Positions 13,877 to 36,850 of a DNA stretch of 36,850 nucleotides are shown here, one piece after another. A model generated the notes under the pieces. The model did no database searches and was not told where the DNA came from. It saw only the letters and a program-made list of their open reading frames with translations. The position numbers and the translations under genes are program-made. Origin of the DNA: Pelomyxa schiedti (lineage: Eukaryota > Protista > Evosea). How positions within the stretch are numbered: the stretch's first letter is position 1; each line of letters starts with the position of its first letter. The stretch is taken from contig JAHLWZ010000087.1 in assembly GCA_020536535.1 (NCBI GenBank), forward strand, positions 1 through 36,850. Direction: 5' to 3'.

Positions 13877-14214
13877 GTGTGGACGACAACCGAGGTTTCT
13901 CAATCAAACAGACTGAATCTGTGCCCATAAAAAGGCCTTTTCGTCTTTTTCGATGAACAAGGGTTTTCCTTTAAAAAAAGAAAAAACACAACAAACAACG
14001 CCAATACATCGCCGCCGCGGTGACACCACTCCCCTGCCTCGACGCCCCACGACACACCCCCCACACTAATCTCCAACATCAACACCTGCAACCGACGTTA
14101 CACTTTTTTTTTCTTTAAGAGACAACTACACCCTGTGAGGTCGGTACCATCCCATAAGCGGGCCACAGCCACCCACGCATATAAGCGACACTAGGAACTC
14201 GACAACCTAATCGA

Positions 14215-15874
<1,660 letters not shown>

Positions 15875-16034
15875 TGAACCCACCTACGCAATACAAAATA
15901 ACCCCCTTGTTACCGTGTTGTCTTTTCTTGGCGCACTTCCCTTCCGCGTTCCGTTGTTCTTTCCTCTTTTGTGCCAAGATTCCAGTATTTTGTGGCAAAC
16001 GACGTCGTGACAGAGAAGCGGGGCACGGTGTGTC

Positions 16035-17426
16035 ATGGTCGTTGGTGTCGGGGTGGTGATAGCGGTGGTTGTTGCAGTGAGCAGCAGCACTTATGGGGCA
16101 GCTGTGACATACAACAGCGCATGCGGAGAGCGAGCAGCCCACAACGGCACGACAGGGGAGGTTGGTGTGAGGTTCGTTGTGTACAGCGACTCGGTCGGGG
16201 GCAACGACGTACACAGGTACACCCAACCACCCACCCACACAATACGGTCAATTATGGGTGGGGCATACACACTGCGTAGGGAATTGATTGGGACTGTGCT
16301 GGGGCTGGACCCTGCTCCGGCATTTGTACTTCACTGTGGGGACAGCGTGGATGGGAGTGACGTAGACGGCGTGTGGGGTGATTTCTTCTCCATCATACAG
16401 CCGGCCTGCAACACTTATCCGTTTTTCATTACTATGGGCACGTTGTTGTGCTTGAGTATGCCTTTCCTGATTATTATGCAGGCAACCACGACGAGCCAAC
16501 CGATGCTTGGGCCGAGAGGATGTCCTCTGAGTTGTATGTAGTCGATTCTATCTTTTGAAGTAATTTTTCGGCAAGATATTACTCTTTTGACTGGGGGTTG
16601 TATATACACGTAATCGTTGTAAATACGTTGATCGATACGGATACTGGAAGTGCACAATACCAGTGGTTGCAGGAGGACCTTGCTTCTGCCTCTATGATGC
16701 CGCGTTGGGTCTTTCCTCTCAAAATCACTATTATATCTAACAGCGTAACAAACACCAATTCAGATTTTTGTTATACAGCACCACCCGCGGTATTCTACTG
16801 GCTACCACGGTTGCCAGCATAAAGTGGAAGCGTTTTCTGAATTGTATGCTACCTACAACGTTACTGCGGCTTTCCAAGGGTTGGAACATATGTAAAATAT
16901 TGTAGACCCTACCTCTAATTCCTGTTCAGGCATGATCACGGTTACGAGCGAATATTCCCACTGAATGGCTATCATTCTTTTGTTCTTGGAGGTGGTGGGG
17001 AGACCTTACGCAACCAAAAGTGGACAGATACCTGGAGTGCCAAATTTGTTAAAACCAACCACTTTCTGATTGTTGATATTGTCACCGAGGCATGTATTTC
17101 CATTCCCAACTACGCGAAAAGAAAAACAAAAAAAAAGAGAAAAACAACTCACTAACAAATCCCAGAACCACCTGATATTCACGGCTGTCAAACACAACGA
17201 CGCCAGCCAAGTGATAGAGACCCTGGAACTGGATAATGGGAAGCCCTATCTGTGGTATGGGGTGGAAGGCGGTGCATCCACCCACTGCCAATGCGATGAT
17301 TCCTGGAAACTACCCGTAGCCATCGTGGTCACAGCAGCAGTACCTCTGGCCTGTGTGATTCTAGCCATCCTAGTGGGCAAACTGTTCCAATCCCGCATCA
17401 TGTTCCCTTCCCCTGAAGACCCTTGA
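16035..17426 (+). CDS. Membrane-anchored calcineurin-like metallophosphoesterase (purple-acid-phosphatase-like)
   Basis: Signal peptide; YSDS, HCGDSVD, M|GNHD, HHPRYS, GHDHGYER, LGGGG motifs; C-terminal TM helix VAIVVTAAVPLACVILAILV. Confidence 0.85.
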
Positions 17427-17510
17427 AAATTAAACGAAGATCCTTCTTCGAAAGCACGATCGCACAAAAAAAAAACAACCAAACAACAGCAGCGGGGTGT
17501 GATCTGCGGG

Positions 17511-18256
17511 ATGCCGTTCTGCGGTAGTTGTGGGAGTAAAATAGCGGATGGGTCTCGGTTCTGCCCAGGGTGCGGTACCGCCGTGGGACCCGTTGGTCGC
17601 TTTTGTTCCTCGTGCAACAACAAGGTTATGGGATTGTCACAACACTAATAATAAACACTGACATATTCACAACCACCAAACAAACTAGCTCGCTGATGAT
17701 GCGCGATTCTGCCCTGTGTGTGGCACAGCAGCCGGGGGCTCGGCAGCCAAGCCCTCGTCCTCGTCCTCGTCGTCGTCGCCTAGTACTAGTGCCAGGGCGT
17801 CACCGTCGTCTACTACTTCATCGTCACCCTCTACAAGAAAAGGTTTCTCTTGCGTGTTACTACATCAATGAACTAACGGGCACCGTGTAACTCTGCACTA
17901 GTCGGTGGAACAACAGCCTCACAAACCACTTACCAGAAGTCCATTCACTATGCGAGTCCCGAGGTGAAGCCTGTTGGACCGGCATCGTCGGCCACTGAGC
18001 AGTATATACCTCCCTCTTATTTTCAACTCGTAACTGCCAAAAAAAAAGCTGCCCAGGGTGTGGAGGTGTAATTGGGGGAGGAGAGGAAAAGCTTGTTGTC
18101 ACAGGGAAGGAGTGGCATCGCACATGCTATCTATCAAGGGGATCGGGGTCTCCCACAGTCCCCGCTCGGGAAACAGGAGGGGGTGGTGCACTCAAGTGCA
18201 GCTTACCTGAGGCTACTTATGAGAGGCAACCGGACTGGGCCTTTGCTGAAAGGTAA
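17511..18256 (+). CDS. Double zinc-ribbon protein with a C-terminal single LIM-type finger
   Basis: MPFCGSCGSKIADGSRFCPGCG..FCSSCNNK|LADDARFCPVCG, a Ser-rich linker, then CPGCGGVIGGGEEKLVVTGKEWHRTC; three introns inferred. Confidence 0.75.
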
Positions 18257-18392
18257 CTAAGGAAAATGTAATCTAAGAACTAAGAAACGAAAAAACCGCG
18301 AAGTAATAAAGTGAGGAATTAAAGTAGCTATTAACGATGTACTAGGAGCAAGAATAAGTCTGGAAAAGGAGGACAATACAAGGATGGAATGT

Positions 18393-18733
18393 TTAGGTCC
18401 TAAAAATAGCGATATGTACCAAAAGAGAAAAAAGAGAAGTTACCTTGACTCCATTGTGTCACCCATTAAATCCTTTATTTCTTGAATGTGGAAGTGGTCA
18501 TCGTGCTTGTAGATTGTTGTATTTATTCTTCTTGCCGGCTTTTGGCCACATTGTTAGTACATTACTTTTTCCGGCATGAGTGACGCACCTCAAAGCATAG
18601 TACCACCTGGTCTTCCTTCCCACTTTCCGCAAGTACACACCCACACAAGAGAACAAGTCCATTTGCAGGTACACTTGTATACTCCTGGCCACAATCAGAC
18701 TGCGTCATTTTGGCCCACTGGATGGCACACTAC

Positions 18734-18800
<67 letters not shown>

Positions 18801-19055
18801 CATATATATATATACGTATATACATATATATATATACATATATATATATATACATATATATATACATATATATATATGCAATACATACATACGTACCATG
18901 AGTTTATTGATGGCACCCTGCAAGCACTGGCCCATCCTGAGCCTCTGTGACCGCGATTTTATGCAATGGACTGTGTCCGCGTCGCCCTGCACCATCCCCT
19001 TGACTCGCTGCAGGTCCCCGTCCACGGGCCGTATCGCAACTGACAGCACGTGCAT
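18393..19055 (-). CDS. Stand-alone eRF1 N-domain (domain 1) homolog, about 118 aa, with divergent stop-recognition motifs
   Basis: Exons 19055-18897, 18684-18589, 18538-18444, 18399-18393, all joined by GT-AG introns, with TACTAAC in intron 2. Product: [118 protein letters not shown]. Collinear with eRF1 from SMISLIIPP through TASNIKSR, VPPNGLV and FEPFKPINTSLYLCDNKFH. Confidence 0.85.
18731..18878. repeat. (TA)n microsatellite with TACA interruptions, inside intron 1 of the eRF1-N-like gene
   Basis: About 148 bp of tatata/tacata. Confidence 0.97.
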
Positions 19056-19158
19056 CCCCCCCCCCCTTTACCCCTACACTACTGCCCCTGCCAACCAGTC
19101 CATTCGCGGCACCGACTTCGAGGAAAAAATAAAAACCAACAGCCGACACCCTAACGCA

Positions 19159-20593
19159 ATGGCATGGGGAGGGGGCGACGACTACGGGTACGGAGGGTGG
19201 GGAGGGGGAGGGACAGGGGGACGTGGCAGGGGGTGGGGCGGGAGCGGAACGGGGAGGACGGGGACGGGGATGGGGATGGGGATGGGGATGGGGGGCAGCG
19301 GAGGAGGATGGTCGGGTACGGGTACGGGGATGGGGATGGGGATGGGGATGGGGATGCCGATGATGATGGGCGGGGGGGTGTCCACTGAGGACTGGGAGCT
19401 GGCGATGGCAATGGCTCAGTCTAAAAAGGAGTACGACGACCTACAGACCGTGAACGAGGCCGTGGAGGAATCCAACAAACTAGCTGACAGGGAGAGGTAC
19501 CCTACCGACGCCCCCCCTGCCCCCGCGTGTTGTGTCTATGCTGTAACAATTTACGTCGGTTGTATCTGGGGGTGTGCTTTGTGTGCCTCTATTGGACTAA
19601 ATCCAGGGGATAAAGGCGCAGGAAAGAGGGACACGCTTCATCGAGACCCAGGAGAGTGGAGTGCGCAATGGGCGTGAATCAGAGGATGCTGGGCAGGGTT
19701 AATGCCTGTACTTTTTACTCCATTGGCTTTCTGCAAAAAGTACCCACCCCAACATACCATTGAAAATATCCGTAATAATAACCCCAAGTAAAACTCAAGA
19801 TAGGCTCTCATGTTAACAAACTCTAGTGAGATTAACGGCGAGTGGCTATTAGAGGTATCGATCCACCACTACTACGCTTTTCTTAATGTGCATAGCTTCT
19901 ACAAGTACCAGGAATCGATATTCCAGGTAATATTTCACTTAGTTTTTTCCCTAATAAAGGTACAGAGGGAAATCGCGAACATCCCGATGCCATTCAAGTC
20001 ATTCAAAGAGAACTAGGAGGCGCTCTGTACCCAGTCGATACAAGCGGCACCAGAGCAATGGATGCCGTCATGGTATCAACTCATCTACCAGGCACTTCTG
20101 CCCGAAGCTCCGGTGTCACAGCAAACGCTCTGGGTGAATTGATATGCCCTCCTCTTTTGGATGTCCTCAATTCCGAAATGCAAAAGGTATTCCCCCAAAG
20201 CACAAACCCCACAACAGCCCACGTCTCTGACCCCACACACAGGAGAACATCTTCGGCGGGCTTCTTCTAAACGGCACGGAAACCTTTGCGTTCTGTAAAC
20301 TACCCCAGTCGGCCAGCAACCCGACGGCGTGCCTTGTGCTGTTCGACCCGCACGGGGATGCTACGCAAACGGAGCCCGCGTTCTGCAACATCTGGGAGAA
20401 CCTCGGCGCGGGCTCCCTGGGCCTGGCTGACTTTGTGGATGAGCGCAGCAGTGTGCAGGTATCACTCATAGGCGGGACCATTGACTTGGTTCTACTGGCC
20501 AGGCCCTCAGTCCCCAGGCCATCACCACCACCACCCACAACAACACCCTCGACTGCAACAGCATCACCAAACACCAACGACAAGAAGGACTGA
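19159..20593 (+). CDS. UIM-containing viral-tegument-like deubiquitinase (VTD / peptidase C76-like)
   Basis: Gly/Met/Trp-rich N-terminus, [20 protein letters not shown]. Spliced catalytic region [20 protein letters not shown] (Cys codon 19707-19709) and [27 protein letters not shown] (FDPH at 20342-20353). Confidence 0.7.
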
Positions 20594-20776
20594 CACCCTC
20601 GCTCTCATTCTCAATGTAACTCCCAACATCAAATAAAACGATTGATTTTCGCTTTTTGTTTGAAAAAGTGTTCTTCCTGTAATAAGAAAAAACGAAAGAA
20701 GTATCTCGTTGTGTCGCTACTCCGTAGCCCCCTCCTTGTATAACACGTATAACGCCGCTATAAATTATAAATCCCA

Positions 20777-23700
20777 ATGGTATGACGTCCCGCCTTTTTT
20801 TTTATTTTTGTTGTTGGTTTTTTGTGTCGAATTAATTATGCCTTTTGTACCGTTGTGCCTGACACTAGTATCAGAAGAAACAACAAGCGCGAGGGGGGTC
20901 AGGCTCCCGATCGCGATCGCGGTCGCCACAGAGCCGCTCGCATTCTCGATCACCGTCTCGTTCTCGTTCTCGTTCTCGTTCTCGCTCTCGTTCGCGGTCA
21001 CCCGCCGCCAGATCTCCATCCCGCTCACGATCCAGATCCCGATCCAGGTCTAGGTCTGTATCGAGGTCGGGATCAGGATCCGGCAAACAGATGGCAGGCA
21101 AAGTTACGAAGGCTGTCAGCACCGCTGTATCCTCTGGCAAAAAACTAGCCTGGTCACGTTCCCCATCCCCACGGTCACGGTCACGCTCACGGTCACGGTC
21201 TAGATCAAAGACTCCTTCCCGATCCCGATCTCGCTCACGCTCAAGGTCCAAGTCAGGGTCAGGGTCACAACCCCGGCGTGACAGAGACAGGAAAATCGAG
21301 CACAAGTCGAATGGCTCACGCAGTAGCTCCGGGGGTGCTGCTGCTGCTGGGGGAAAATTGAAGTGGTCCCGCTCTAGGTCCCCTTCAAAGTCTCGCTCTC
21401 GCTCTCGCTCTCGCTCTCGTTCTCGTTCTCCGGCTGCTTCTCCACCCAAGAATTCTAAGAATTCTACAGCGGCCCCGGCAGCACCCAAGGTTCTGGGACC
21501 ACCCTCAACGCCGCCTCCACCGANNNNNNNNNNNNNNNNNNNNNNNNNNNNNNNNNNNNNNNNNNNNNNNNNNNNNNNNNNNNNNNNNNNNNNNNNNNNN
21601 NNNNNNNNNNNNNNNNNNNNNNNTCTCGCTCTCGCTCTCGTTCTCGTTCTCCGGCTGCTTCTCCACCCAAGAATTCTAAGAATTCTACAGCGGCCCCGGC
21701 AGCACCCAAGGTTCTGGGACCACCCTCAACGCCGCCTCCACCGAGTAATGTGACTGCTGGACCCCCCAGCGGGCCACCACCACGGAGTGCCGGTGGGCCT
21801 CCTTCAACACCCGCACCAAAGGCACCAAAGCAAACTGCCGGCACGCATAGAGCACCATCGCCTCCAGCTGGTGGCAGTGGTGGCGTGGCTGGTGACTCGC
21901 CAACTTCATCTGTTGTGGTTCATAGCAGAGGCAACAGCCCTGCACGAAAAGCCAATCGCAGGAGTGGGAGTAGGACGCCGAGCAAGAGTAGAAGCCGGTC
22001 AAGGCGTAGGAGCAGAAGTAGAAGTATCAGTCGGCGTGGCAGTGTGAGCAGAAGCAGAAGTAGGAGGAGCTTGAGTGGGAGCAGAAGGAGCAGAAGTCAA
22101 GGAGCCTCTATTCGAAGTGGAAGGATAAGCAGGAGCAGAAGTAGGAGTAGAAGCGGGAGTTGGAGAAGCAGAAGCCCAAGGAGTCGAAGCATAAGTAGAA
22201 GTAGAAGTATAAGCAGGCCCAGAAGTAGGAGTGCAAGTTGGAGAAGTCGCTCGGCAAGTTGGCGAAGCGGCAGTGGCAGTGGTTCCTACAGGTCTCGGCG
22301 GTATGAAGACAGAGATAGAGATAGGCGCAGTACAACTAGCTCTGTTAAATTTGCGGCCTATGCCCTCAGCCATGGCAAGGTTCCAGAAAAAAAATTAATG
22401 GCCGAAACTGCAGGAATCCAGCTAAAAGAGTCTCTCTCTGTATGTGTTTTGTCATACTTTTTTTCCAGCTGATCCTTTTGAAGAAGCAACAAGTACTTGA
22501 TGAAACAAAGTTTTCTGAACAATGGGCAGTCAAACCTTCTGGATACAAGCCGCCAAAGTACAAAAAGGGGACTGGCTTTGGTTTTCAGCCTGTTCATCCA
22601 CTTGAGAACCCCCCAGGAAAGTGGTTGCAGTACTTCCTTCCCAGTTTTTTCTGCATTGCCATGTCCTTTGCAGCTTTGTCAATCGTTTGGTACAAAATGC
22701 ATGAAGTTTGGTCCGATATTCCAGCTGGAATAGCTCACGCCATTGCCATCGCAGCCGCTGTTTTATTAGTTGCAACTTGTGTAGTCTCTGGTTCTAGGCT
22801 TTTCCTTCACCCAAGGTATGATCCTGCTGTATCCAACCAAAATTGTTAACTGGAATATATCAAGGGTTGTTTGGGCTGAGTTTTTCCATCACATGAAAGG
22901 AAATTTCTATTGTTCCATCGCAATAACCATCCTGCTATTATCTGTTGCATCTTCTAATGCAGATGTCAGGAATATGGCAATTGTTCTCTGGGTAAACTTT
23001 TTTTTTTTGTAATATCTTCCTTTGACATGCAAGTGTAGACTATTGCTGTTGCCATTCATCTTCCTCATTCACTTTTTATTATTGGAAGGTGGTTTACAGC
23101 ACCACAAACTAGACTCACTGACTGTAGCCCTGCTTGTTTCCTACCCGTTGGTATGTTGAATTCGAGTGAAAATTTCCTTTATACTTCCCTGTTCACCCTT
23201 TTCCAGTCGGGAATCTTATGGCTGCCTATGCCGGCGCAGAAATTGGCATTAGGCATCTCTCGTGGCTTTTTTATTCTGCTGGCATCATTTTCTGGTTTAT
23301 TGTGCTCACAATTTTCTTTGTGCGGCCTACATTCTACCAAACAAACTTTTCTTATAAATCCTCAGGTCAATCTTCTTCAGACAAGGCTTGGATCCATTTC
23401 CCTCGTCCCAGTTATATTCTTGCTCATGCCGCCGGCGGCCATTGCCGGTGTTGCTTACAACTCTCTTGAGGGACCTGGCTCGTTTTTCAAGTTTGGTGTG
23501 TTTGTATCTTTCTTCATGCTGTTGCTTCTTGGCAGACTAACCCTTGTGTGGGTGAGGGTATGAACCCTGCATACTCGCTATGAGTTTCCATTGGCTAACC
23601 AAATTCGTCAGGCACCTTTCACACCCAATTGGTGGACAGTTGTTTTCGCACTTGAAACAGTTGCCATAGCCGCCGGTTTGTTGGGCAATCTTCAACGGAA

Positions 23701-23958
23701 TTACCTAAATTTTCTCCAGGTGACTGGGCCCTCTATGTTATGGCAACCAATGATGCCGCCGCTGCGCTTGCATCCTCTTCCTCCTCGGGCATAACTATAG
23801 AGCATGTTGATGAAGTAGCGGCCAGAATATGGCTTGGCTTGAACCTTGTTCTATCCATGATCTCCCCGATCACAGTCTGTATCTGGACTGTTCTGACTGC
23901 TGTGAGGCACAAACTGTTCATTATGGATGAAATGGACTTGGAGGTTGGCAAGGCGTAA
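20777..23958 (+). CDS. SLAC1/TehA (TDT-family) anion channel with a very long RS-repeat N-terminal domain
   Basis: ATG-only first coding exon (20777-20779), roughly 450-500 aa of RS/Pro-rich sequence spanning a gap, then the TDT core: LQYFLPSFFCIAMSFAALSIVW, PR|VVWAEFFHHMKGNFYCSIAI, SPACFLPV|VGNLMAA, FLLMPPAAIAG, PFTPNWWTVVFALET. Confidence 0.75.
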
Positions 23959-24001
23959 AGTAATGGACGAACCACACCAATGTACAAAGAAAAAAAATGT
24001 T

Positions 24002-26868
24002 TTACTGTGTTAATTTTGTTTTGCCTTTGCCTCTAAAACAGTACTTTTTGAAGGTGAGGTTCAATCGAGCACCAACGAGTGGGTCTGGTAAGTTCTCATT
24101 GAATCGAACTTTGAATTTTCCAGATGATTTCCCAAAAGTACTATCAATGACCCCTTGCCGGGCTACAATAATGGTTAGGTTAAAAAATAGGTGTTGAGGC
24201 CGCACGTGGCGTTGTAGTGAGTGTAATTTTCAACCCAAGAAATACTTCTGGGTTAGTTTCTTTCTTGAACAGGTTCTTACCAACTAAGGTCCGTTGATCA
24301 ATTATCTGTATTGCAATTATTATCTGTATTATGTGAGGAGTTGAGAGAAATATACCCTGTCGATAGAGCCAACTTTGGTCTTGGAGTGGAAAATGTTGAG
24401 TTGTTCCTTCCGCAGATTAATTACCGGCCGAGTATTATCTGCTGTTGACTGGGAAGCTGAAGTGGAAGTTGTTGCAGGTACAAGTGAAGTGGAAGATGCA
24501 GAGGGGGGTGGATTTGGGGAAGGTTTGGTGGCACTAGGTTTCTGTTGTAAAGTTTTATTTGGAGGTGCCTTGGGAGTAGCTGCAGGGCCGGACGGTGGTT
24601 TTGCGGCAGTACTTGGCTTAACAGTGGTGGTTTGTGAAGCATCAGCAGTTGTAGAAGTATCGGAACTCGCGATATCAACTGCCTGCAGTATGTGCCCATG
24701 AAAGGCTAGTCTGCACATATTCTTATCTGTGAGATATGAGTATGTTTCGATCATAGTGCAAGAAGGGAAAGTAAGCAAACTTATATCTGTATCCATTCGA
24801 GAAGCAATAAATATCGAATTGACAGGGATGAGAATTGGTTGCTCAAACTCAAGTAACGCGAAGTAAGTCAAGAAAGTAGGGGATTGCTGAGAAACTGTTG
24901 AGGTTGTTGTAGTGGTATTCTTGTTGCTTGTAGTTGGTGTTGGAGTAGCCTTGCTTTGACCTATCCCGGGAATTAGTGACACGTATTCGTATTCACTCCT
25001 TGGATCGAATTGGCCTGTAAGACTGTCAAGAAAAAAAGGGAAAAATGAAGCCAGTACTCTGGGAGTTGGACCCAAAGAACGTGACGGTTGCCAGAACGGT
25101 GGTATGTGCAACAGTAACTTCAAGAATGAGCGAGGATCAACATGACCCAAAAAATACCATGAAACTTCGATCCAGTAGTCAGCTCTTGTTTATAGTACGG
25201 CACCTTATTAACAGAGACAATGGCAGCAGGGAAAAACTGGGTGGTATTGGGCGAACAAACTAAGCCTCGCTCTAGCAAGTTAGCATCAAATTGTGGGAGG
25301 CAGACACCAACTCTGTGTATATAAATATCAGAAAGTTTAGGAAAGTGATACCTGTCTCCAACGGCTGCACTTTGAACTGGCTTGTGGAAGACTTGTATTG
25401 ACTTCACTTTGCGCTTCAGGGTGAGCATTGGTACTTCGACTGTCTCATTTACTTGGACGGTTCCTACGAAATGTATTCGTCAGCTCATAGAGAGATTTAG
25501 GTTCACCTACCTCTGAGAATAGTTCCTGTCATCACTGTTCCTTGGCCTTTTACCTGGAAGCAATGATCAACGGCCATTAAAAAGGGAGCAGCTAAAGTCT
25601 GTTGCAAAATTAATACTGGAGATTACAAGGCGTCATGAGACCTTGGTCCTATTCTGTAAAAGTTCGGCATCCACAAACTTCAATAGATGCTGTTTCAAGT
25701 TTTCCAGACCATCAATGTTTGAGCTTGTGGAGGCTAAACGGTATTAGTGGTAAAACACAATATAAAAATGTTGACCTGGATCAGTACTACGTGGAGCTGC
25801 ACTGAGAGGAATTATAGAACATCCAGAGAAGGGAGTGACAGCAAAAGTCTTTTCGAGACGGATTTTCATCTTAATACCGCTTAGGTGAACCTGAAAGAAA
25901 GAAAAAAAAAAAAACCTTTTCAACTGAGGATGCCCGGATTTCAGAAGGTAGTAAATCAACTTTATTTAGCGCAACTACTAGCTTTTTTGTGGCAATCGAG
26001 CCTATAACCAGTCCCTTTTGAGTTGACAATAGTTATAACACCTAATTCCTTATGCAATTCAACCTCTGAAGTTTGTGTTTGAATGCCTTTGATCACGTCA
26101 ATAACAAGGATCATCATATCCATAATCTGTGAACCGCCAATGATTGTGCGAATTAGAGAGGCATGACCTGGGCAGTCCACCAAGGTAAACTGCACTTGAC
26201 TGTATTCTAACACAGTTTATCAATTAACAAACAAGGAGAATACTAGAATGAGAAGAAATATGGCCATCAAAAAAAAATACCAGGGAATGGAGAAGGCATC
26301 ATGAAAGCAGAGAACCCCAAATCCAGAGTGATTCCCCTCTGTGCGCTCTGTGGACTTTTATCGAAGGCGGCAGTAGATGCCTCGCTACTCAGTGCCTTTG
26401 CTACCCAGCCAGGTCAGGCAACGTTAATATGGCCACCCCACCTTCCAAATCCACAACCCAATCACATGCACGTTACATACCCAACGAAGTCTTGCCCGAG
26501 TCAATGTGGCCCAGCACCCCCACGTTCACATTCAACACCCTCCCTGTCCCCCCTGTCCCCGTGGCCGCCGCCCCTCCTCCTCCTCCTCCACCGCCACCGC
26601 CCCCCTGTGGCCCCACAACCTGCTCCACCGTTGTCCCTGTACTACTACTACTACTACTACTACTGCTGGTACTGGCAGCAGCAGTGCTCGTTGCAGCCGC
26701 AGTGCTTGGTGACGTGGCGGGGGTGACCGTGGCCGTGGGTGCCACGGTGGCAGGAAGTGGTTGTGGTGGTGGCGCCGTGCACCCTGTACTACCACTAGTA
26801 GCAACGGTACAGGTTCCCTCGGTTCCCTCCCCCACTGTACCACTTGTCACTGGCTCCTTGTCACCCAT
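24002..26868 (-). CDS. EEFSEC: Selenocysteine-specific elongation factor eEFSec
   Basis: NVNVGVLGHIDSGKTSL|AKALS..STAAFDKSPQS..RGITLDLGFS, FTLVDCPGHASLIRTIIGGSQIMD, AVDHCFQVKGQGTVMTG, VKSIQVFHKPV..GDR|VGVC, CRLAFHG, GVIDSTFGKSSGKFKV, LTFKKY. Confidence 0.95.
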
Positions 26869-26920
26869 CAAATTCGTGGAAATGGAACCCCCTCTTATCT
26901 AATGTTAGCAATGGAGGGGT

Positions 26921-28280
26921 TTATGAGCTGTGGGACTGGGACGGAGTGGAAGTGGTAGTGGTGGTGGTGGCGGCACAAGTGGTTGTGGTGGTTGTGGAAG
27001 CAGAAGGGGAGACCGTGAGAGACGGGGGCAGGGTGATGAGGCAGGTGAGTGAACTGTGTTGTGGAGAGGGCGGCAGGCGCCTCTTGATAAGGAGGGAAGC
27101 ACCACACGACGCAGTGGTGATGAGGTTGGTGAGGGTGGATGCCGGTTCCCCGGCAGATAGTGCACATAGTGCAAGGGCCCCCGCGATGTTCCCATCTGAT
27201 TTGGCTTTGGGGTCCGTGTCAACGAGGCTGTTCAGTACTGCAAGAGCGGAGGACTGTGGGCTGGTTGTTGTGGTGGTTGTAGATTGTGTGGTTGATGCGG
27301 GAGATGTCGTAGCGGTCGCAGGCCGAGTATTGATCGATACGGCAGAATCGGTGCTTAGATGACAGAGTGCCAGAAGGGCCGCTGCCAATCTTTGCTGGTG
27401 TAGACCGGTTTCATCTGCCCTCTCACCGGTAACTGTGTTTAAGTAAGGAGACAAATCCATGGTATTACTGGCATAATAAGAAATTCCCACACCCATGGAA
27501 GTGAGGCGTTGCATGGCAGGTTGTTTCTTGCCACAACAGAAATCAACCCAGGCAACCAGCGCATCCACGGCATCACAGTACTCAGATGACACCTTGTTGG
27601 TAATTGAGGTAAAGTAGCGGGCGCTGTTGGTTACCTCAACGCCACAGCATCGGTCCAGCACAAAGTCCGCAATAGAGGTTGCACCCAAATCGGCTACAAG
27701 GGCCGAGCACAGAGCTCTGAGGTAGATATTGGAAGGTTCTAGTGAGAGTCATTACAAGTCTCTTACCAAGCCCTCCATCCAACTGCAATTTACCTTGAAC
27801 AGAGAGAGGCCTGGTGCCCAGCACTTTACAAGCTTCCGACAGAGAATCCACGTCCCCCATCAAATAAGCAACCTAAAAACATAAGAGATAAGACAAGCCG
27901 AACGCTTAGTGCTGTGCTTTGTAGTCGTAGCCACACCCATAATAGTTGCGTACCTCGACCCACGCACGCAGCATCCTAGTGGAATTGGGGCAGTCGACGC
28001 GCCACTTGGCCAGTGCATCCGCGCATGTGCGCAGCACGCCAACGTCGCGCAGGGCCACGTGGGCCAGTGCGTGCGCCTCGTCCAGGTCGAGCCTGCTCGC
28101 CACTGCCTCCCCGCACAACGCTACAGCCCGTGCCATGTCCCCCACAAAGTATGCGTCCTGTGCCTGTGTCAACGCGTCGTCATCGTCATTCTCTGCCTCG
28201 TCCCCATCCGGGACACCCACTACGAATTCCCCGTCGTCATCGTCGTCACTAGCAGGAGCATTCGGTGGAACAAACGACAT
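26921..28280 (-). CDS. Hypothetical alpha-helical protein (acidic N-terminus, possible TPR-like helices)
   Basis: Multi-exon model. The second copy keeps the reading frame in exons while frame-breaking indels fall in predicted introns. No family recognised. Confidence 0.6.
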
Positions 28281-28404
28281 TCAGAATCCCTTGCTGAGAT
28301 GCGATCTGAGAATCGAGCCCAATTGCACTTGCACAATTCGCAAGCAATCACAGAAAATAAAAAAGCCGAGGCACAGTACAGCGCCCCAGATACCGACGCG
28401 GACG

Positions 28405-31267
28405 ATGACATCGTACAACCTCGCGTACAACCTCGACGCAGCAGAATTCGTGCCGCGAGCGTACCAGCCCCCAGCGACCCCGGCCGCGACGGCACCTACT
28501 GCCCCTCCCACCGCCTCTGCGCCCCCGCCAGCCATCAAGTACACAGGCGTCGTTACGCTAGGAGGCGGCTCCACCCCCGCACCGAAGAAACCCGCGGCGC
28601 CAGCGCAACAACAGCAGCAGCAGCCGGGAGGAGGAGGAGGAGGAGGCAAAGGCGGCAAGGCCAAGGGAGGTAACGCCAACGCCAACCAACAGCAGCAACA
28701 ACCAAGCAACAAATCTAATAAGACAGGGGGGGCACAGCAGCCAGCGGCCAAGGGCAAACCGGCAGCCCAGCCCCAGCAACAGCCAGGAGGAGGGGGCAAG
28801 GCCAAGGGGGGGCCAGCAGCACAGGGCTCCGCGTCCACCGCGCCCAAGGCAGCCGTGGTCACCATCGGCGGGCCCAGCCCAGCCAAGACACCCAGCCCAA
28901 CCCCGTCGGCCACGTCCACAGCCACAGCAGCCGCGAGCAAGACGACGACGACGACGACGACGACGACGCCGCCAGCCAAGGCATCGTCGCCACCCCCCAA
29001 GGCGTCGACGCCGCCGCCCGACCCCACTGCTGTTCAGAAACCATCAACGAAGGGAGGGAAGAAGCCTGCAGCTGACGCCGCCACGGCCAAGCCCACCCCC
29101 GCTGCTACTAGTGCTGCAGCCACATCTAGCAGTACTGCTGCTAAGCCCAAGGCTGCCTCGCCATCCCCTGACAACCTCGGGGATGAGGAAGATTACGGCG
29201 ACATACCCCCAGAGTATGCAGTCATTCTATTTCTATGAAACTTCAACTTTTCTGACTTCATCTTAGGGAAATGGTAATGGCCCCCAGGTAAAACTTTCTG
29301 ATTTGCATTGACTTTTTCCCCAGGACGATGAACTGCGTGCTGAACTTCGCAATATTGCTGTGGAGGAAATGCAACTCGTGGAGGAATCACGAGAAAATAT
29401 GAACGTTATATTCATTGGCCATGTCGACTCTGGCAAGTCTACTATCAGTGGGCAAGTATTGTATGTGCTGCAGGCTTCAATATTTCTACTTAAACTTTTT
29501 CAGATTGCAGACGGGTATGGTCGAAAAGAGGCTCATAGACAAATATGAAGGAGAAGCAAGGGAGAAAAACAGAGAATCATGGTGGCTTGCCTACATTATG
29601 GGTATTCCTTTCCCACAACTGACACTGGATTTCGAGTCACATAAAAACAGATATGATTGAAGAAGAAAGGCAGAAGGGTAAAACAATTGAAGTCGGCCGT
29701 GCCAACTTTGAGACTTCCGTTAGGAGATACACAATTCTGGATGCACCAGGGCACAGGAGTTATGGTACGCCTGCTTCACTATACCGGTTCTTTTTGCTTA
29801 CTGTTAAAAATCAGTTCCAAATATGATTGCTGGAGCTGCACAGGCTGATATCGGTATTCTCGTTCTGTCAGCCAGAAAAGATGAATTTGAGACTGGTTTC
29901 GACAGGGGTGGCCAAACGAGGGAGCACACCCAATTGGCTAAAACTGTGGGAATCAAGCAGTTGATTTGTGCTGTAAATAAAGTATGTTCCTCAAAAGTAC
30001 ATTTAGGAGGGAATAATCGCGGATGCTCAGATGGACGATCCAACGGTAAACTGGTCGATAGAGCGCTATAACGAAATCGTGGACAAAATGACTCCTTTCT
30101 TACTAAAGCAATGCCAATACGCAAAAAAAGGTACGTGGTTACCTTTGTTCCTTTTTTTTCCTTATTCATACACAGATATCATTTTTGTGCCAATTTCGGG
30201 TTACGCTGGTATAAACATCAAGGACCCTGTAAAACCCTCTGTTTGCCCTTGGTACAGGTAGTGTCCCATCCACTTTGCTTGTTTATTTCTCATTACCTAC
30301 ACAGTGGTCCTTGTCTTCTGCAAATTTTGGACTCGCTCACTGTGCAGAGGGGGCGAGACGATCTGCCACTCAGAATGCCTATCATTGACAAGTATAAAGA
30401 TATTAGAGGCAACAGTGTTATCATGGGCAAAATTGAAAGCGGCACCATTCTTCTTGAAGGGACAGCAATGATCATGCCAACACGAGTGACTGTGGAAGTC
30501 TTTGGCATCATTGCAGATGAACAAGGCACGATGCTGAAGAAGGCCAGACCTGGTGACAATGTGAGATTGATGATCAAAGGTACCTCTTTTCCCACTTTCA
30601 GAATTATTAACCAAATCACAGGGGAGGTACCCGAAAATGTATTTAGTGGCTTTGTACTTTGCAGCACTTCAGACATCATTCAACCCGTTTCTACTTTTGA
30701 AGCTCAGATAGTTGTTATGGACTTGCAACCCAATAAATCTGTATTTTGCCCTGGGTATCAAGCTGTCTTTCACTGTCACACCGCAGTCGAAGAGTGCCAG
30801 ATTACGGTTTCTTTTGTACCGCTTTTTTTTCTTCTTCACTCATTATCCACAGAGATTGCTGGCGCAAATTGACAAACAAACTGGTGTCCTCCAAAAGAAA
30901 AACCCAACATTTGTCAGAGTTGGGAGTGTTGTGGTGGCTCGCGTTGTGCTTGCAAAGCCGGTCTGCCTCGAGAAATTTGATAGCTACCAGCAACTTGGCA
31001 GATTCACTCTTCGTGATGGAGGTAAGCCATATAACACCCGAACCGCTTTCTCAAATTCTCTAAGGCAAAACAATTGCTTTCGGAAAAATTACTTTCCTTG
31101 GAAAGCGCCCGCCAAAGAACCCCGCCAAAGCAACAACCACGCCAGCAGCGGCAACTTCAACAACAGCAACAACACCATCCGAGACCACTACCATCACAAC
31201 AAGCGTAACACCCGCAACGCCCGCGGAGACTACAACCGTTACACCCGCAACACCCGACCAGGAATGA
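28405..31267 (+). CDS. SUP35: Eukaryotic peptide chain release factor 3 (eRF3/Sup35)
   Basis: PAM2 YNLDAAEFVPR, Q/G/P/T-rich N-region, NVIFIGHVDSGKSTISG, REKNRESWWLAYIM, GKTIEVGRANFET, ILDAPGH, ADIGILVLSARKDEFETGFDRGGQTREH, NK|MDDPTVNWSIERY, QLGRFTLRDG|KTIAFGKI. Confidence 0.95.
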
Positions 31268-31444
31268 ATTCGTGGCTAATGGCTCCTTTCATACGCAATG
31301 ACAGCTAGGCTGCAAGGTAGTGTCTGAGAAACCAATCCCTTCCTNNNNNNNNNNNNNNNNNNNNNNNNNNNNNNNNNNNNNNNNNNNNNNNNNNNNNNNN
31401 NNNNNNNNNNNNNNNNNNNNNNNNNNNNNNNNNNNNNNNNNNNN

Positions 31445-31962
31445 GGTGTTGCTTACAACTCTCTTGAGGGACCTGGCTCGTTTTTCAAGTTTGGTGTGTT
31501 TGTATCTTTCTTCATGCTGTTGCTTCTTGGCAGACTAACCCTTGTGTGGGTGAGGGTATGAACCCCTAACCCTAATACTCGCTATGAGTTTCCATTGGCT
31601 AACCTAATTCGTCAGGCACCTTTCACACCCAATTGGTGGACAGTTGTTTTCGCACTTGAAACAGTTGCCATAGCCGCCGGTTTGTTGGTCAATCTTCAAC
31701 GGAATTATCTAAATTTTCTCCAGGTGACTGGGCCCTCTATGTTATGGCAACGAATGATGCCGCCGCTGCGCTTGCATCCTCTTCCTCCTCGGGCATAACT
31801 ATTGAGCATGTTGATGAAGTAGCGGCCAGAATATGGCTTGGCTTGAACCTTGTTCTATCCATGATCTCCCCGATCACAGTCTGTATCTGGACTGTTCTGA
31901 CTGCTGTGCGGCACAAACTGTTCATTATGGATGAAATGGACTTGGAGGTTGGCAAGGCGTAA
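31445..31962 (+). CDS. SLAC1/TehA channel C-terminal part, second copy
   Basis: Matches 23447-23958. Confidence 0.75.
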
Positions 31963-32003
31963 AGTAATGGACTCTCCACACCATTGTACAAAAGAAAAAT
32001 GTT

Positions 32004-34829
32004 TTACTGTGTTAATTTTGTTTTGCCTTTGCCTCTAAAACAGTACTTTTTGAAGGTGAGGTTCAACCGAGCACCAACGAGTGGGTCCGGTAAGTTCTCA
32101 TTGAATCGAACTTTGAATTTTCCAGATGATTTCCCAAAGGTACTATCAATGACCCCTTGCCGGGCTACAATAATAGGGTTAATGTAAAAAAAAAGAATAA
32201 TCTCAGGCCGTACGTGGCGTTGTAGTGAGTGTAATTTTCAACCCAAGAAATACTTCTGGGTTAGTTTCTTTCTTGAACAGGTTCTTACCAACTAAGGTCC
32301 GTTGATCAATTATCTGTATTGCCAATTATTATCTGTGTTATGTGAGGAGTTGAGAGAAATATACCCTATCGATAGAGCCAACTTTGGTCTTGGAGTGGTA
32401 AATGTTGAGGTGTTCCTTCCGCAGATTAATGACCGGCCGAGTATTATCTGCTGTTGACTGGGAAGCTGAAGTGGAAGTTGTTGCAGGTACAAGTGAAGTG
32501 GAAGATGCAGAGGGGGGTGGATTTGGGGAAGGTTTGGTGGCACCAGGTTTCTGTTGTAAAGTTTTATTTGGAGGTGCCTTGGGAGTAGCTGCAGGGCCGG
32601 AGGGTGGTTTTGCGGTAGTACTTGGCTTAACAGTGGTGGTTTGTGAAGCATCAGCAGTTATAGAAGTATCGGAACTCGCGATATCAACTGCCTGCAGTAT
32701 GTGCCCATGAAAGGCTAGTCTGCACATATTCTTATCTGTGAGATGTGAGTATGTTTCAATCATAGTGCAAGAAAGGGATAGTAAGCAAACTTATATCTGT
32801 ATCCATTCGAGAAGCAATAAATATTGAATTCACAGGGATGAGAATTGGTTGCTCAAACTCAAGTAACGCGAAGTAAGTCAAGAAAGAAGGGGATTGCTGA
32901 GAAACTGTTGAGGTTGTTGTAGTGGTATTCTTGTTGCTTGTAGTTGGTGTTGGAGTAGCCTTGCTTTGACCTATCCCGGGAATTAGTGACACGTATTCGT
33001 ATTCACTCCTTGAATCGAATTGGCCTGTAAAGACTGTCAAGAAAAAAAGGGAAAAATGAAGCCAGTACTCTGGGAGTTGGACCCAAAGAACGTGACGGTT
33101 GCCAGAACGGTGGTATGTGCAACAGTAACTTCAAGAATGAGCGAGGCTCAACATGACCCAAAAAATACCATGAAACTTCGATCCAGTATTCAGCTCTTGT
33201 TTATAGTACGGCACCTTATTAACAGAGACAATGGCAGCTGGGAAAAACTGGGTGGTATTGGGCGAACAAACTAAGCCTCGCTCTAGCAAGTTCGCATCAA
33301 ATTGTGGTAGGCAGACCCCAACTCTGTGTATATAAATATCAGAAAGTTTAGGAAAGTGATACCTGTCTCCAACGGCTGCACTTTGAACTGGCTTGTGGAA
33401 GACTTGTATTGACTTCACTTTGCGCTTCAGGTTGAGCATTGGTACTTCTACTGTCTCATTTACTTGGACGGTTCCTACGAAATGTATTCGTCAGCTCAAA
33501 GAGAGATTTAGGTTCACCGACCTCTTAGGATAGTTCCTGTCATCACTGTTCCTTGGCCTTTTACCTGGAAGCAATGATCAACGGCCATTAAAAAGGGAGC
33601 AGCTAAGGTCTGTTGCAAAATTAATACTGGAGATTAAAAGGTCATGAGACCTTGGTCCTATTCCGTAAAAGTTCGGCATCCACAAACTTCAATAAATGCT
33701 GTTTCAAGTTTTCCAGACCATCAATGTTTGAGCTTTTGGAGGCTAAACGGCATTAGTGGTAAAACGCAATATAAAAATGTTGACCTGGATCAGTACTACG
33801 TGGGGCTGCACTGAGAGGAATTATAGAACATCCAGAGAAGGGAGTAACAGCAAAAGTCTTTTCGAGACGGATTTTCATCTTGATACCTCTTAGGTGAACC
33901 TGAAAGAAAGATAAAAAAAAACCTTGTCAACTGAGGATGCCCGGATTTCAGAAGGTAGTAAATCAACTTTATTTAGCGCAACTACTAGCTTTTTTGTGGC
34001 AATCGAGCCTATAACCAGTCCCTTTTGATAGTTATAACACCTAATTCCTAATGCGATTCAACCTCTGAAGTTTGTGTTTGAATGCCTTTTATCACGTCAA
34101 TAACAAGGATCATCATATCCATAATCTGTGAACCGCCAATGATTGTGCGAATTAAAGAGGCATGACCTGGGCAGTCCACCAAGGTAAACTGCACATGACT
34201 GAATTCTAACACAGTTTATCAATTAACAAACAAGGAGAATACAAGAATGAGAAGAAATATGGCCATTAAAAAAAATACCAGGGAATGGAGAAGGCATCAT
34301 GAAAGCAGAGAACCCCAAATCCAGTGTGATTCCCCTCTGTGCGCTCTGTGGACTTTTATCAAATGCGGCAGTAGATGCCTCGCTACTCAGTGCCTTTGCT
34401 ACCCAGCCAGGTCAGGCAACGTCAATATGGCCACACACACATTCATACACACACATGCATACCCAACGAAGTCTTGCCCGAGTCAATGTGGCCCAGCACC
34501 CCCACGTTCACATTCAACACCCTCCCTGTCCCCCCTGTCCCCGTGGCCGCCGCCCCTCCTCCTCCTCCACCGCCACCGCCCCCCTGCTCCCCTGTTGTCC
34601 CTGTACTACTAGTACTACTACTGCTACTGCTACTGCTACTGGCAGCAGTGCTCGTTGCCGCCGCAGTGCTTGGCGACGTGGCGGGGATGGCCGTGGCCGT
34701 GGGTACCACCACGGTGGCAGGAAGTGGTTGTGGTTGTGGTGGTGCCGGGCACACTGTAGTAGCAGCGGTACAGGTTCCCTCGGTTCCCTCCCCCACTGTA
34801 CCACTTGTCGCTGTCTCCTTGTCGCCCAT
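32004..34829 (-). CDS. EEFSEC: eEFSec, second copy or allele
   Basis: Same exons and motifs as 24002-26868, with small differences in low-complexity tracts; an upstream in-frame ATG exists at 34838. Confidence 0.9.
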
Positions 34830-34879
34830 CAAATTCATGGAAAATGGAACCCCTCTTATCTAATGGAGGGGAGGAGGGT

Positions 34880-36223: not shown

Positions 36224-36345
36224 TCAGAATCCCTTGCTGAGATGCGATCTGAGAATCGAGCCCAATAATTGCACTTGCACAATTCGCAAAAGCAATCACA
36301 GAAAATAAAAAAGCCTAGCACAGCCCCCAGAGACCGACGCGGACG

Positions 36346-36850
36346 ATGACATCGTACAACCTCGCGTACAACCTCGACGCAGCAGAATTCGTGCCGCGAG
36401 CGTACCAGCCCCCAGCGACCCCGGCCGCGACGGCGCCTACTGCCCCTCCCACCGCCTCCGCGCCCCCGCCAGCCATCAAGTACACAGGCGTCGTTACGCT
36501 AGGAGGCGGCTCCACCCCCGCACCGAAGAAACCCGCGGCGCCAGCGCAACAACAGCAGCAGCCGGGAGGAGGAGGAGGAGGAGGCAAGGGCGGCAAGGCC
36601 AAGGGAGGCAACGCCAACGCCAACCAACAGCAGCAACAACAACCAAGCAACAAATCTAATAAGACAGGGGGGGCACAGCAGCCAGCGGCCAAGGGCAAAC
36701 CGGCAGCCCAGCCCCAGCAACAGCCAGGAGGAGGAGGCAAGGCCAAGGGGGGGCCAGCAGCACAGGGCTCCGCGTCCACCGCGCCCAAGGCAGCCGTGGT
36801 CACCATCGGCGGGCCCAGCCCAGCCAAGACACCCAGCCCAACCCCGTCGG
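36346..36850 (+). CDS. SUP35: eRF3 N-terminal part, second copy, truncated by the window end
   Basis: MTSYNLAYNLDAAEFVPR.. as at 28405. Confidence 0.85.
   Translation, partial: MTSYNLAYNLDAAEFVPRAYQPPATPAATAPTAPPTASAPPPAIKYTGVVTLGGGSTPAPKKPAAPAQQQQQPGGGGGGGKGGKAKGGNANANQQQQQQPSNKSNKTGGAQQPAAKGKPAAQPQQQPGGGGKAKGGPAAQGSASTAPKAAVVTIGGPSPAKTPSPTPS

Follow-up and report, generated by a model that had tools for sequence, protein, structure and literature searches.

In the genome of Pelomyxa schiedti, we identified a minus-strand gene at positions 18393-19055 of the window (the whole 36,850-nucleotide stretch of DNA that was analysed) in which four exons join into a 118-aa ORF, starting with the ATG at 19055 and corresponding to the N domain of eRF1. 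This stand-alone, N-domain-only eRF1 homologue is almost certainly a real gene; it is transcribed and all three of its introns are spliced. The best overall explanation, for and against which we find the probabilities evenly poised, is that the gene encodes a selected N-domain-only protein whose likeliest role, if it is functional, would be that of a non-catalytic competitor of eRF1 at the ribosomal A site.

Normally, eRF1 exists as one three-domain protein that is highly conserved. No description of naturally encoded and expressed eRF1 proteins consisting only of the stop-codon-reading domain was found in the literature that we searched. If the Pelomyxa protein is made on purpose, it would provide a simple protein-based means of tuning termination, readthrough or UGA recoding. 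Should the gene prove to be a relic, it still shows partial duplication creating a clean single-domain gene, it reveals a wrong public gene model in need of correction and it documents an unusual eRF1-like expansion in P. schiedti, including a copy seemingly without the GGQ motif.

Gene structure and transcript

The coding part of exon 1 spans 53 codons (18897-19055) and was defined by the sequence and its ORF, an RNA contig from run X2, BLASTP and alignment. It corresponds to human eRF1 residues ~32-85, which comprise helices alpha2-alpha3 and the NIKS loop, here represented by CIKS. Intron 1 (18685-18896; 212 nt, GT..AG) contains a (TA)n microsatellite identified by TRF at 18734-18877, and its joint is present in the X2 RNA. 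Exon 2 (18589-18684; 32 codons), covered by contigs from X1 and X2, encodes the VPxNGLV..CG..GKE..FE strands and is separated from exon 3 by intron 2 (18539-18588; 50 nt, GT..AG), which carries a branch-like TACTAAC site and whose joint was found in both runs. Exon 3 (18444-18538; 31 codons plus 2 nt), defined by RNA contigs and alignment, corresponds to eRF1 residues ~119-146; this region contains the INT..Y.H..HFH strand and the last N-domain helix, and it ends at the linker between the N and M domains. Intron 3 (18400-18443; 44 nt, GT..AG, or CT..AC on the plus strand) is followed by the coding part of exon 4 (18393-18399), which reads G ACC TAA with the stop codon at 18395-18393. Because the frame ends immediately (AGG TAA) when intron 3 is retained, translation stops after the N domain whether the last intron is spliced or not, as the initial annotation of this DNA had stated. 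The 5' flank (19056-19070) consists of a run of 11 G (19056-19066) preceded on the minus strand by an in-frame TAA at 19070-19068. The AG at 19067-19066 shares its phase with the ancestral intron-1 acceptor; in the canonical paralogue C1215, the 3' end of intron 1 lies just before the N-G-T-S codons.

The RNA evidence is composed of contigs from P. schiedti single-cell RNA-seq, all runs representing one sample from one study. The joints connecting 18589 to 18538 and 18444 to 18399 were present in contigs from both X1 and X2. In addition, an X2 contig bridges intron 1, passing from position 18684 into the 3' end of exon 1 and extending for 168 nt to its own terminus at ~19064; an exon still further upstream, not seen in this contig, is possible. 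No splice to further downstream exons was observed in the RNA contigs from these two runs. The four minus-strand exons, their GT-AG introns and the 118-aa ORF, all originally read from the letters of the DNA, were therefore confirmed by sequence and by all three RNA joints. The gene had also been described as hidden; it is indeed a real spliced gene, but the locus already has a public entry, the hypothetical protein Pelo_1081, whose ab initio model of 169 aa gets the first intron wrong. The acceptor at 18730 used by this model is ruled out by the RNA joint at 18684.

The eRF1-like gene overlaps tail to tail with a convergent gene on the plus strand, whose exons (17499-17624, 17689-17842, 17902-18001, 18049-18252 and 18346-18403) were defined by GT..AG RNA joints and open frames. 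The product of this neighbour matches the Zn_Ribbon_1 and DZR families, and its stop codon is the TAA at 18401-18403; exon 4 of the eRF1-like gene sits inside its last coding exon (18346-18403). On the other side, a divergently oriented gene lies ~100 nt from the eRF1-like gene. Genes for eRF3 and eEFSec are located within 12 kb, and the P. schiedti genome also encodes tRNA-Sec.

Homology to eRF1 and origin of the gene

Our homology searches used single exons as queries, together with the public Pelo_1081 sequence and its parts (residues 1-53, equivalent to exon 1, and residues 106-169, equivalent to exons 2 and 3). In a phmmer search against the PDB, the matches were exclusively eRF1/aRF1 chains; the best of these was the human N domain (PDB 2LLX; E 4.7e-13), aligned over human residues ~35-142, and the protein overall corresponds to residues ~32-147. 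The alignment to eRF1 contains one single-residue insertion and is otherwise gapless, in agreement with the near-gapless alignment proposed originally, and exon-by-exon alignments with eRF1 from the same genome were collinear. Exon 1 matched the latter with a BLASTP E of 1e-5; exon 2 showed 45% identity to it (E 4e-9) and 52% identity to a canonical eRF1. The Pfam eRF1_1 profile, suggested in the initial annotation as a check, did match Pelo_1081 with an E of 1e-4, but the score of 22.6 bits, to which exons 2 and 3 alone contribute, for this reason narrowly missed the 23.8-bit cut-off. Single exons, which are too short, gave no Pfam match. The search of protein representatives returned 431 matches at E<=1e-3, and each of the 14 whose sequences were examined proved to be eRF1. 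Five high-ranking matches composed of many stretches were TPR-repeat proteins (three checked against Pfam) and were dismissed as spurious, since their scores sum many weak repeat matches. An AlphaFold2 model of Pelo_1081 calculated with an eRF1 alignment was distorted, with the spurious Ile/Tyr-rich stretch from the (TA)n intron modelled as one long helix and with low confidence in the beta half. A Foldseek search with this model returned 19 eRF1 structures and one archaeal aRF1 as the top 20 matches (E ~0.03), the model being that of a mis-annotated sequence and not a valid fold test of the 118-aa protein.

The conserved positions include I62-K63-S64, R65, R68, the VPxNGLV..CG..GKE..FEP..INT core, Y125, D128, F131 and H132. 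The decoding motifs of eRF1 (NIKS, YxCxxxF and GTS) do not occur in their canonical forms. In the alignment, TASNIKS is replaced by TVHCIKS and YxCxxxF by YKHDDHF, so that S60 corresponds to histidine, N61 to cysteine and C127 to histidine, and E55 is replaced by aspartate. The combination of a retained scaffold and rewritten decoding motifs noted from the sequence is thus upheld by the alignment. Since the start methionine aligns to T32, the protein lacks helix alpha1 and the GTS loop.

The M domain with its GGQ motif is also absent, the stop codon being placed directly after the N domain. Whole-genome profile searches, in which the best candidates were scored, listed six matches for eRF1_2 and six for eRF1_3, none of them on this contig, and tblastn with the paralogue ORFs detected no M-domain or C-domain match in the region 14000-21000 of the window. 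With the M (GGQ) and C domains absent from the transcript and from the surrounding 7 kb, peptidyl-tRNA hydrolysis, which the initial annotation had already denied the protein, is implausible, and eRF3 would not be bound in the usual way; the protein predicted from the sequence is not expected to be a release factor. Nor does it belong with Dom34/Pelota, given its eRF1-type N domain and the absence of the M and C domains.

The P. schiedti genome encodes a canonical full-length eRF1 with standard motifs (C1215), which is the separate copy that the initial annotation had put forward for confirmation, as well as at least three further eRF1 paralogues (C424, C267 and C383) and Pelota (C804). In C383, the GGQ stretch is apparently replaced. 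The eRF1-like protein shares 33% identity with C1215, 33% with C424 and 25% with C383, and 33-38% with domain 1 of canonical eRF1s. The position of intron 1 (after ..KLM) is equivalent to that of the intron after ..RLK in C1215, C424 and C383, and the position of intron 2 (after ..CFE) to that of the intron after ..DFE in C1215 and C383. Because these two introns occupy eRF1's own positions, we infer that the gene originated by partial duplication of an eRF1 gene, the copied segment reaching from ancestral exon 2 to halfway through exon 5. Intron 3 has no counterpart in any of the examined paralogues (these are continuous at this point) and therefore represents a new intron at the point of truncation; this intron and the 7-nt terminal coding exon would have been drawn from the antisense strand of the neighbour's last exon. 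A split gene, with the N domain encoded here and the M and C domains on C267, was rejected, as C267 appears to carry its own N-domain exons. With ~115 saturated sites, a tree of the paralogues would gain little resolution.

Selective constraint and competing explanations

Comparison with C1215 by the NG86 method gave a dN of 0.75 and a saturated dS of ~2.3, and the identity at the three codon positions was 0.48/0.61/0.33. Synonymous sites were saturated against every paralogue, and the split from all of them must therefore be old. When neutral drift from the canonical paralogue was simulated, ~0.57 substitutions per site were needed to arrive at the observed 33% identity; under the same drift, the probability of acquiring no stop codon was 0.03, that of acquiring no indel was <0.003 and that of keeping the 8 inherited splice bases was 0.01. 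The consensus residue was kept in 50% of the columns that are >=90% conserved and in 35%, 28% and 0% of the progressively less conserved ones (Fisher p 0.011), and many of the substitutions in the eRF1-like protein are conservative. That the reading frame, splice sites and family-invariant core residues have all been preserved argues for relaxed purifying selection on a folded protein over most of the time since the split. The initial annotation had taken the intact frame and splice sites as a sign of selection, and their survival despite saturated synonymous divergence likewise argues against pure neutral decay. We consider it probable that the gene has been kept by selection as an N-only protein. 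The signals of constraint could predate the truncation and reflect a full-length stage; the dN/dS of the gene's own lineage could be as high as ~0.6, or old constraint could be mixed with recent neutrality.

A different explanation is that the locus represents a transcribed relic, either a partial eRF1 duplicate or the recently truncated stump of a diverged paralogue, that is functionless today. We regard this as possible but on the whole doubtful. Such a relic might be transcribed by way of the divergent gene nearby and spliced by way of its intact inherited introns. A diverged parent is plausible because further eRF1 paralogues in this genome have also diverged strongly, one of them seemingly without GGQ, and the very high dN, the alteration of all canonical decoding motifs and the location of a 7-nt terminal coding exon within the neighbour's last exon, behind a new intron, also speak for decay. 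The same applies to the lack of an orthologue in 5.8 billion clustered proteins, 1.84 billion representatives and the JGI metagenomes, collections in which close relatives of Pelomyxa are unlikely to be present. A search of the ESM Atlas by features gave no usable match, and a lone metagenome match was off-frame inside a GC-rich bacterial dehydrogenase gene and was discarded as spurious. The ~82% BUSCO completeness of the assembly (PMC8887013) was counted for the relic as well. However, the ORF, the start codon and all six splice sites are intact despite saturation at synonymous sites, and conservation is focused on the family-invariant positions. Furthermore, the C-terminus of the protein coincides exactly with the boundary between the N and M domains, a point at which no ancestral exon ended, and no traces of M or C exons were detected nearby (14000-21000). 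In place of the hallmarks of a pseudogene, we found two ancestral introns, an open frame, canonical splice sites and a transcript that is spliced. What decay could account for is a young unprocessed relic, including one that arose when an older and already diverged full-length paralogue was recently truncated, and to this we assign a minority share of the probability.

The NIKS and YxCxxxF loops together form one pocket in eRF1. It is improbable, but consistent with the retained core residues, that the protein has been neofunctionalised away from the ribosome while keeping the eRF1 domain-1 fold, for example as a metal- or RNA-binding module or as a binder of N-domain partners. The candidate residues for such a module are H30, C31, H149, H152 and H154 (Pelo_1081 numbering), located where the two loops meet, and most of the substituted residues at the decoding tip are histidine or cysteine rather than a random selection. 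Relaxed constraint explains the same residues equally well, the one structural model is the distorted one of mis-annotated Pelo_1081 and no family of such modules is known. An artefact, whether a chimera of the single-cell-amplification assembly or a piece of a larger gene with exons elsewhere, is very improbable. The genome was obtained from single-cell amplified DNA and comprises 5337 contigs (PMC8887013), and the tracing of the transcript no further in the 5' direction than ~19064 was also counted in favour of an artefact. In contrast, the RNA contigs follow the assembly in the same order from exon 3 through intron 3 and exon 4 into the exons of the neighbouring gene, a DNA run contains 88% of the words sampled from the surrounding 9 kb and a stop codon follows exon 3 whether intron 3 is spliced or kept.

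In the best overall explanation, the gene, a probable partial eRF1 duplicate, encodes domain 1 alone, without the GGQ motif or the eRF3-binding part. If functional, the protein would most likely compete with full-length eRF1 for the decoding site of the ribosome, occupying it without releasing the peptide, and this competition may delay or prevent termination. Given the changes in its stop-codon-reading residues, its specificity would be altered. The role of A-site competitor in particular is less likely than not and draws on analogy: in vitro, the human N domain (residues 1-145) by itself occupies the A site and shifts the toe-print in a stop-codon-specific manner (PMC3632111), and human eRF1 isoform 2, from which the first 33 residues are gone, retains ribosome binding (PMC11277123). 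Against it, residues needed for decoding are changed (N61, C127 and E55) or absent (GTS), and the improvised 3' end and the proximity of the divergent gene fit incidental transcription. It is rather unlikely, though conceivable, that the protein serves as an anti-terminator at some or all stop codons, favouring readthrough or, at UGA, selenocysteine insertion, as part of a diversified eRF1-like set. Action as a ribosome hibernation factor, also proposed in the initial annotation, is a hypothetical role.

Comparison with known eRF1-type systems

The Pelomyxa protein is homologous over its whole length to domain 1 of canonical eRF1 (eRF1_1, eRF1_2 and eRF1_3), and its gene has two intron positions in common with eRF1 genes of the same genome; helix alpha1, the GTS loop, the M domain with GGQ and the C domain of canonical eRF1 are not part of it. 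The closest functional analogue of the proposed competitor is the isolated human N domain 1-145 (PMC3632111; PDB 2LLX), which represents the same domain alone. This fragment folds on its own and binds pre-termination complexes in a stop-codon-specific manner without causing release (PMC3632111). The human fragment, however, is a laboratory construct with wild-type motifs and helix alpha1, whereas the Pelomyxa protein is naturally encoded, begins at approximately residue 32 and contains changed residues.

Human eRF1 isoform 2 has a near-identical N-terminal boundary (M34, compared with the Pelomyxa methionine at T32), and both proteins are devoid of helix alpha1 and the GTS loop. This isoform exhibits weak, UGA-restricted release activity (PMC11277123). 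In contrast to the Pelomyxa protein, it retains the M and C domains as well as NIKS and YxCxxxF, and it is produced by alternative splicing of one gene.

Dom34/Pelota and the GGQ-less eRF1-like paralogues are further members of the eRF1 family; they enter the A site but do not catalyse release of the peptide. Both kinds retain a three-domain architecture, and their delivery by GTPases of the Hbs1 or eRF3 type takes place through the C and M domains. The Pelomyxa protein has neither of these two domains, and it carries an eRF1-type rather than a Pelota-type N domain. The variant-code eRF1s of ciliates and other protists are likewise changed in and around NIKS and YxCxxxF. These are full-length active factors with few substitutions, whereas the Pelomyxa protein is much more heavily changed, its catalytic part is gone and it coexists with a canonical eRF1 that carries the standard motifs.

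Gene structure and transcription

Re-reading of the sequence gave the same exons, introns and 118-codon ORF as the initial annotation, which had placed a hidden gene for a stand-alone eRF1 stop-codon-recognition domain on the minus strand at 19055–18393 (eRF1-N-only gene). The ATG lies at 19055, preceded by an eleven-G run and an in-frame TAA (19070–19068). Coding exons 1–3 measure 159, 96 and 95 nt and are followed by a 7-nt coding tail of exon 4 (G ACC TAA) that ends at 18393. The introns (212, 50 and 44 nt) are all of the GT..AG type; intron 1 is chiefly a (TA)n microsatellite (18734–18877) and intron 2 contains TACTAAC. Retention of intron 3 ends the frame immediately (AGG TAA), and the ORF thus stops directly after the N domain with or without splicing of the last intron.

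Four runs, all from a single study, contain the 9-kb stretch around the locus: three are single-cell RNA-seq, and the fourth, of unrecorded type and probably DNA, includes 88% of the words of this stretch. RNA contigs were compared with positions 15500–18733, up to just short of the TA repeat. Contigs from two single-cell runs, X1 and X2, carry the exon 2–exon 3 and exon 3–exon 4 joints (18589|18538 and 18444|18399), which read CT..AC on the plus strand and GT..AG on the minus strand. One X2 contig match stops at 18685 and is followed by 168 nt of the reverse complement of the exon 1 3′ end, to ~19064. The acceptor used is therefore 18686–18685, as had been assumed, and all three junctions are represented, that between exons 1 and 2 by a single contig. 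These contigs come from one sample, and expression level and strand are not readable from them. None of their joints links exon 3 or exon 4 to sequence beyond the four exons, such as GGQ-domain exons. An AG at 19067–19066 matches the ancestral acceptor of intron 1 in phase, and a further exon may therefore lie upstream.

The unspliced 116-aa ORF, of which only exon 1 scored in a word-indexed search, had a single match, the public hypothetical protein Pelo_1081 of P. schiedti (169 aa). This model is an ab initio error: exon 1 was extended into the TA repeat, which yields a spurious Ile/Tyr-rich stretch; use of the wrong acceptor (18730) inserted 15 more residues ahead of exon 2; and the last codon was omitted. 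The X2 joint rules out the acceptor at 18730, and the true intron (18896–18685) gives a product of 118 aa, not 169 aa. The AlphaFold model of Pelo_1081 is distorted by the insert; its parts 1–53 (exon 1) and 106–169 (exons 2 and 3) served as references. The P. schiedti genome paper nowhere mentions release factors (PMC8887013).

The same RNA contigs contain plus-strand GT..AG introns at 17625–17688, 17843–17901, 18002–18048 and 18253–18345, which belong to a convergent gene (17499–18403, plus strand) whose product has double zinc-ribbon motifs and a linker rich in Ser and Thr. The last coding exon of this gene spans 18346–18403 (stop 18401–18403). The two genes overlap tail to tail in their coding regions and 3′ ends, with stops 6 nt apart on opposite strands, and the contigs fuse the two overlapping transcripts. 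At 17911, one RNA contig carries the sequence of a template-switch oligo, maybe an internal 5′ end or an artefact.

Relationship to eRF1 domain 1 and the eRF1 family

Exons 1, 2 and 3 are each collinear with an eRF1 gene from elsewhere in the genome (E 1e-5, 4e-9 and 2e-4, respectively). A phmmer search of Pelo_1081 against all PDB chains returned eRF1/aRF1 only, with the human N domain (2LLX) at the top (E 4.7e-13); human residues 35–75 align with exon 1 and residues 84–142 with exons 2 and 3. The Pfam eRF1_1 match fell just short on this mis-model (22.6 bits, E 1e-4, cut-off 23.8) because the spurious insert prevents the two halves from summing. Exhaustive HMMER with exons 2 and 3 against 1.84 billion representatives gave 431 matches at E<=1e-3. 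Those inspected were ordinary eRF1 or eRF1 fragments, 40–55% identical, in which TASNIKS and YLCDNKFH have their standard form, apart from a few TPR proteins, spurious matches whose scores were summed over repeats. The representatives also included P0083, a full-length eRF1-like protein of another organism (434 aa, three Pfam domains) with FAKNIKS in place of TASNIKS and no GGQ at the expected place. Judged by this sequence, catalytically dead eRF1 paralogues may exist outside Pelomyxa too.

The alignment with eRF1 requires one single-residue insertion. M1 of the 118-aa product aligns with human T32, so that the protein lacks helix alpha1 and the GTS loop, and its C-terminal end falls at about human residue 147, in the N/M linker. 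The decoding-motif changes initially described stand for E55 (to D), TASNIKS (to TVHCIKS) and YxCxxxF (to YKHDDHF).

In the region 14000–21000, tblastn (all ORFs of the paralogous loci) matched the N-domain exons alone, in agreement with the proposed lack of a GGQ-bearing M domain and a C domain. Genome-wide Pfam searches and tblastn with canonical eRF1 located the predicted separate full-length eRF1 on contig C1215 (TASNIKS, YLCDNKF, GGQ). Contig C424 encodes a full-length paralogue with TASCIKS, and C267 a diverged one that has a GGQ-bearing M domain, a C domain and, from reading by eye, probably N-terminal exons as well. C383 has N- and C-domain matches with TAMSIRT and no eRF1_2 match; its GGQ stretch, read by eye, is apparently replaced. 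The eRF1 family is thus expanded in P. schiedti, and synonymous divergence between all its members is saturated. Pelota is encoded on C804.

Constraint, orthologues and origin

Constraint values were taken from codon blocks by coordinates and summed over exons. The protein shares 33%, 33% and 25% identity with those of C1215, C424 and C383, respectively; dS is ~2.3 against C1215, ~1.8 against C424 and not calculable (saturated) against C383. With dN at 0.75 against C1215, well under dS, change since an old split has been far slower at non-synonymous than at synonymous sites. Identity by codon position is 0.48, 0.61 and 0.33. In simulation, neutral drift from canonical codons to 33% identity takes ~0.57 substitutions per site, and the frame stays free of stops in 3% of runs; the probability of no indel is <0.003 at indel-to-substitution ratios of 0.03–0.1, and that of retaining the eight inherited splice-site bases is ~0.01. 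The consensus residue is kept in 50% of columns conserved at >=90% and in 35%, 28% and 0% of less conserved classes (Fisher p 0.011), and at conserved columns roughly every second replacement is conservative. In combination, these results rule out prolonged neutral decay and bear out the initial emphasis on an intact frame and splice sites despite divergence.

This weighs against the gene being a transcribed relic, a reading we regard as possible but doubtful. In its favour, no orthologue was found in a 5.8-billion-cluster collection (length band 64–296 aa), the 1.84 billion representatives, the ESM Atlas or two scans of JGI metagenome contigs, where the sole match was off-frame in a bacterial gene and not an orthologue. 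The missing orthologues weaken the case for function, but may simply reflect a lack of sequenced close relatives. The constraint results do not date the truncation: the lineage's own dN/dS could be ~0.6, or constraint could be mixed with recent neutrality. On balance, we consider some selected function fairly probable.

In the canonical C1215 gene, one intron precedes the codons for N-G-T-S, another falls within ..VVT/EEGKE.., and others follow ..RLK, ..DFE and ..LYG. The eRF1-N-only gene starts two codons into the counterpart of canonical exon 2, has introns exactly after ..KLM (= RLK) and ..CFE (= DFE), as does C383, and breaks off 16 codons short of the end of the exon 5 counterpart. At that point a new donor opens the 44-nt intron, beyond which the terminal exon lies antisense within the last exon of the neighbouring gene. 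This pattern is what a DNA-level partial duplication of an eRF1 gene, and not a retrocopy, would be expected to leave.

Genomic neighbourhood and possible role

An eEFSec gene lies on the minus strand at ~24.3–26.9 kb (~24329–26871), with a second copy at ~32338–34900 (minus). An intron-containing eRF3 gene occupies ~28.4–31.0 kb (~28380–31000) on the plus strand, ~9.4 kb from the eRF1-N-only gene, with plus-strand ORFs at 27946–29238, 29360–29548, 29653–29826, 29823–30071, 30111–30872 and 30712–31308. A PAM2-like motif at the N-terminus of its product precedes a low-complexity region rich in Pro, Ala and Gln. The GTPase and domains II/III have their best PDB matches in eRF3a (E 2e-19 and 2e-26), with eEF1A and HBS1 far behind. 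A tandem duplication of ~8 kb (23571–28909 versus 31575–36850, ~97% identical) includes eEFSec together with the 5′ portion of eRF3. Bases at ~31340–31470 (X in ORF 31320–31538), just ahead of the second copy, are masked or unknown; the duplication junction is therefore incompletely assembled. Direct repeats of 98–100% identity, dispersed and local (156–637 versus 15999–16482; 738–1037 versus 1251–1550), may reflect recent duplication or redundancy in the assembly. The genome also encodes tRNA-Sec(UCA) (contig C1146:9231–9316), and UGA probably has a dual use in P. schiedti given this tRNA and eEFSec. Chance would not be expected to place eRF1-N, eEFSec and eRF3 within 12 kb of one another, but this observation is post hoc and silent on mechanism.

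The M and C domains of eRF1 are needed for peptidyl-tRNA hydrolysis and eRF3 binding. Lacking both, the eRF1-N-only protein is unable to do either, as the initial annotation held for hydrolysis. Its central observation is confirmed and its interpretation in part supported. The gene represents a new eRF1 variant, naturally occurring and limited to a single domain; it is expressed and has not simply decayed. By analogy with human eRF1, the protein might act non-catalytically at the ribosome as a competitor or anti-terminator, a role we regard as unlikely though worth naming. Human N domain 1–145 alone suffices for a stop-codon-specific toe-print shift and A-site occupancy, though with lower efficiency than full-length eRF1 (PMC3632111). 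Binding to ribosomes and pre-termination complexes is retained in human eRF1 isoform 2, in which the N-terminal 33 residues are missing and activity is weak and limited to UGA (PMC11277123). These results make a non-catalytic ribosomal role plausible. Compared with human eRF1, the Pelomyxa protein keeps K63, Y125 and F131, whereas N61, C127 and E55 are changed and GTS is absent; its specificity, if any, would therefore differ.
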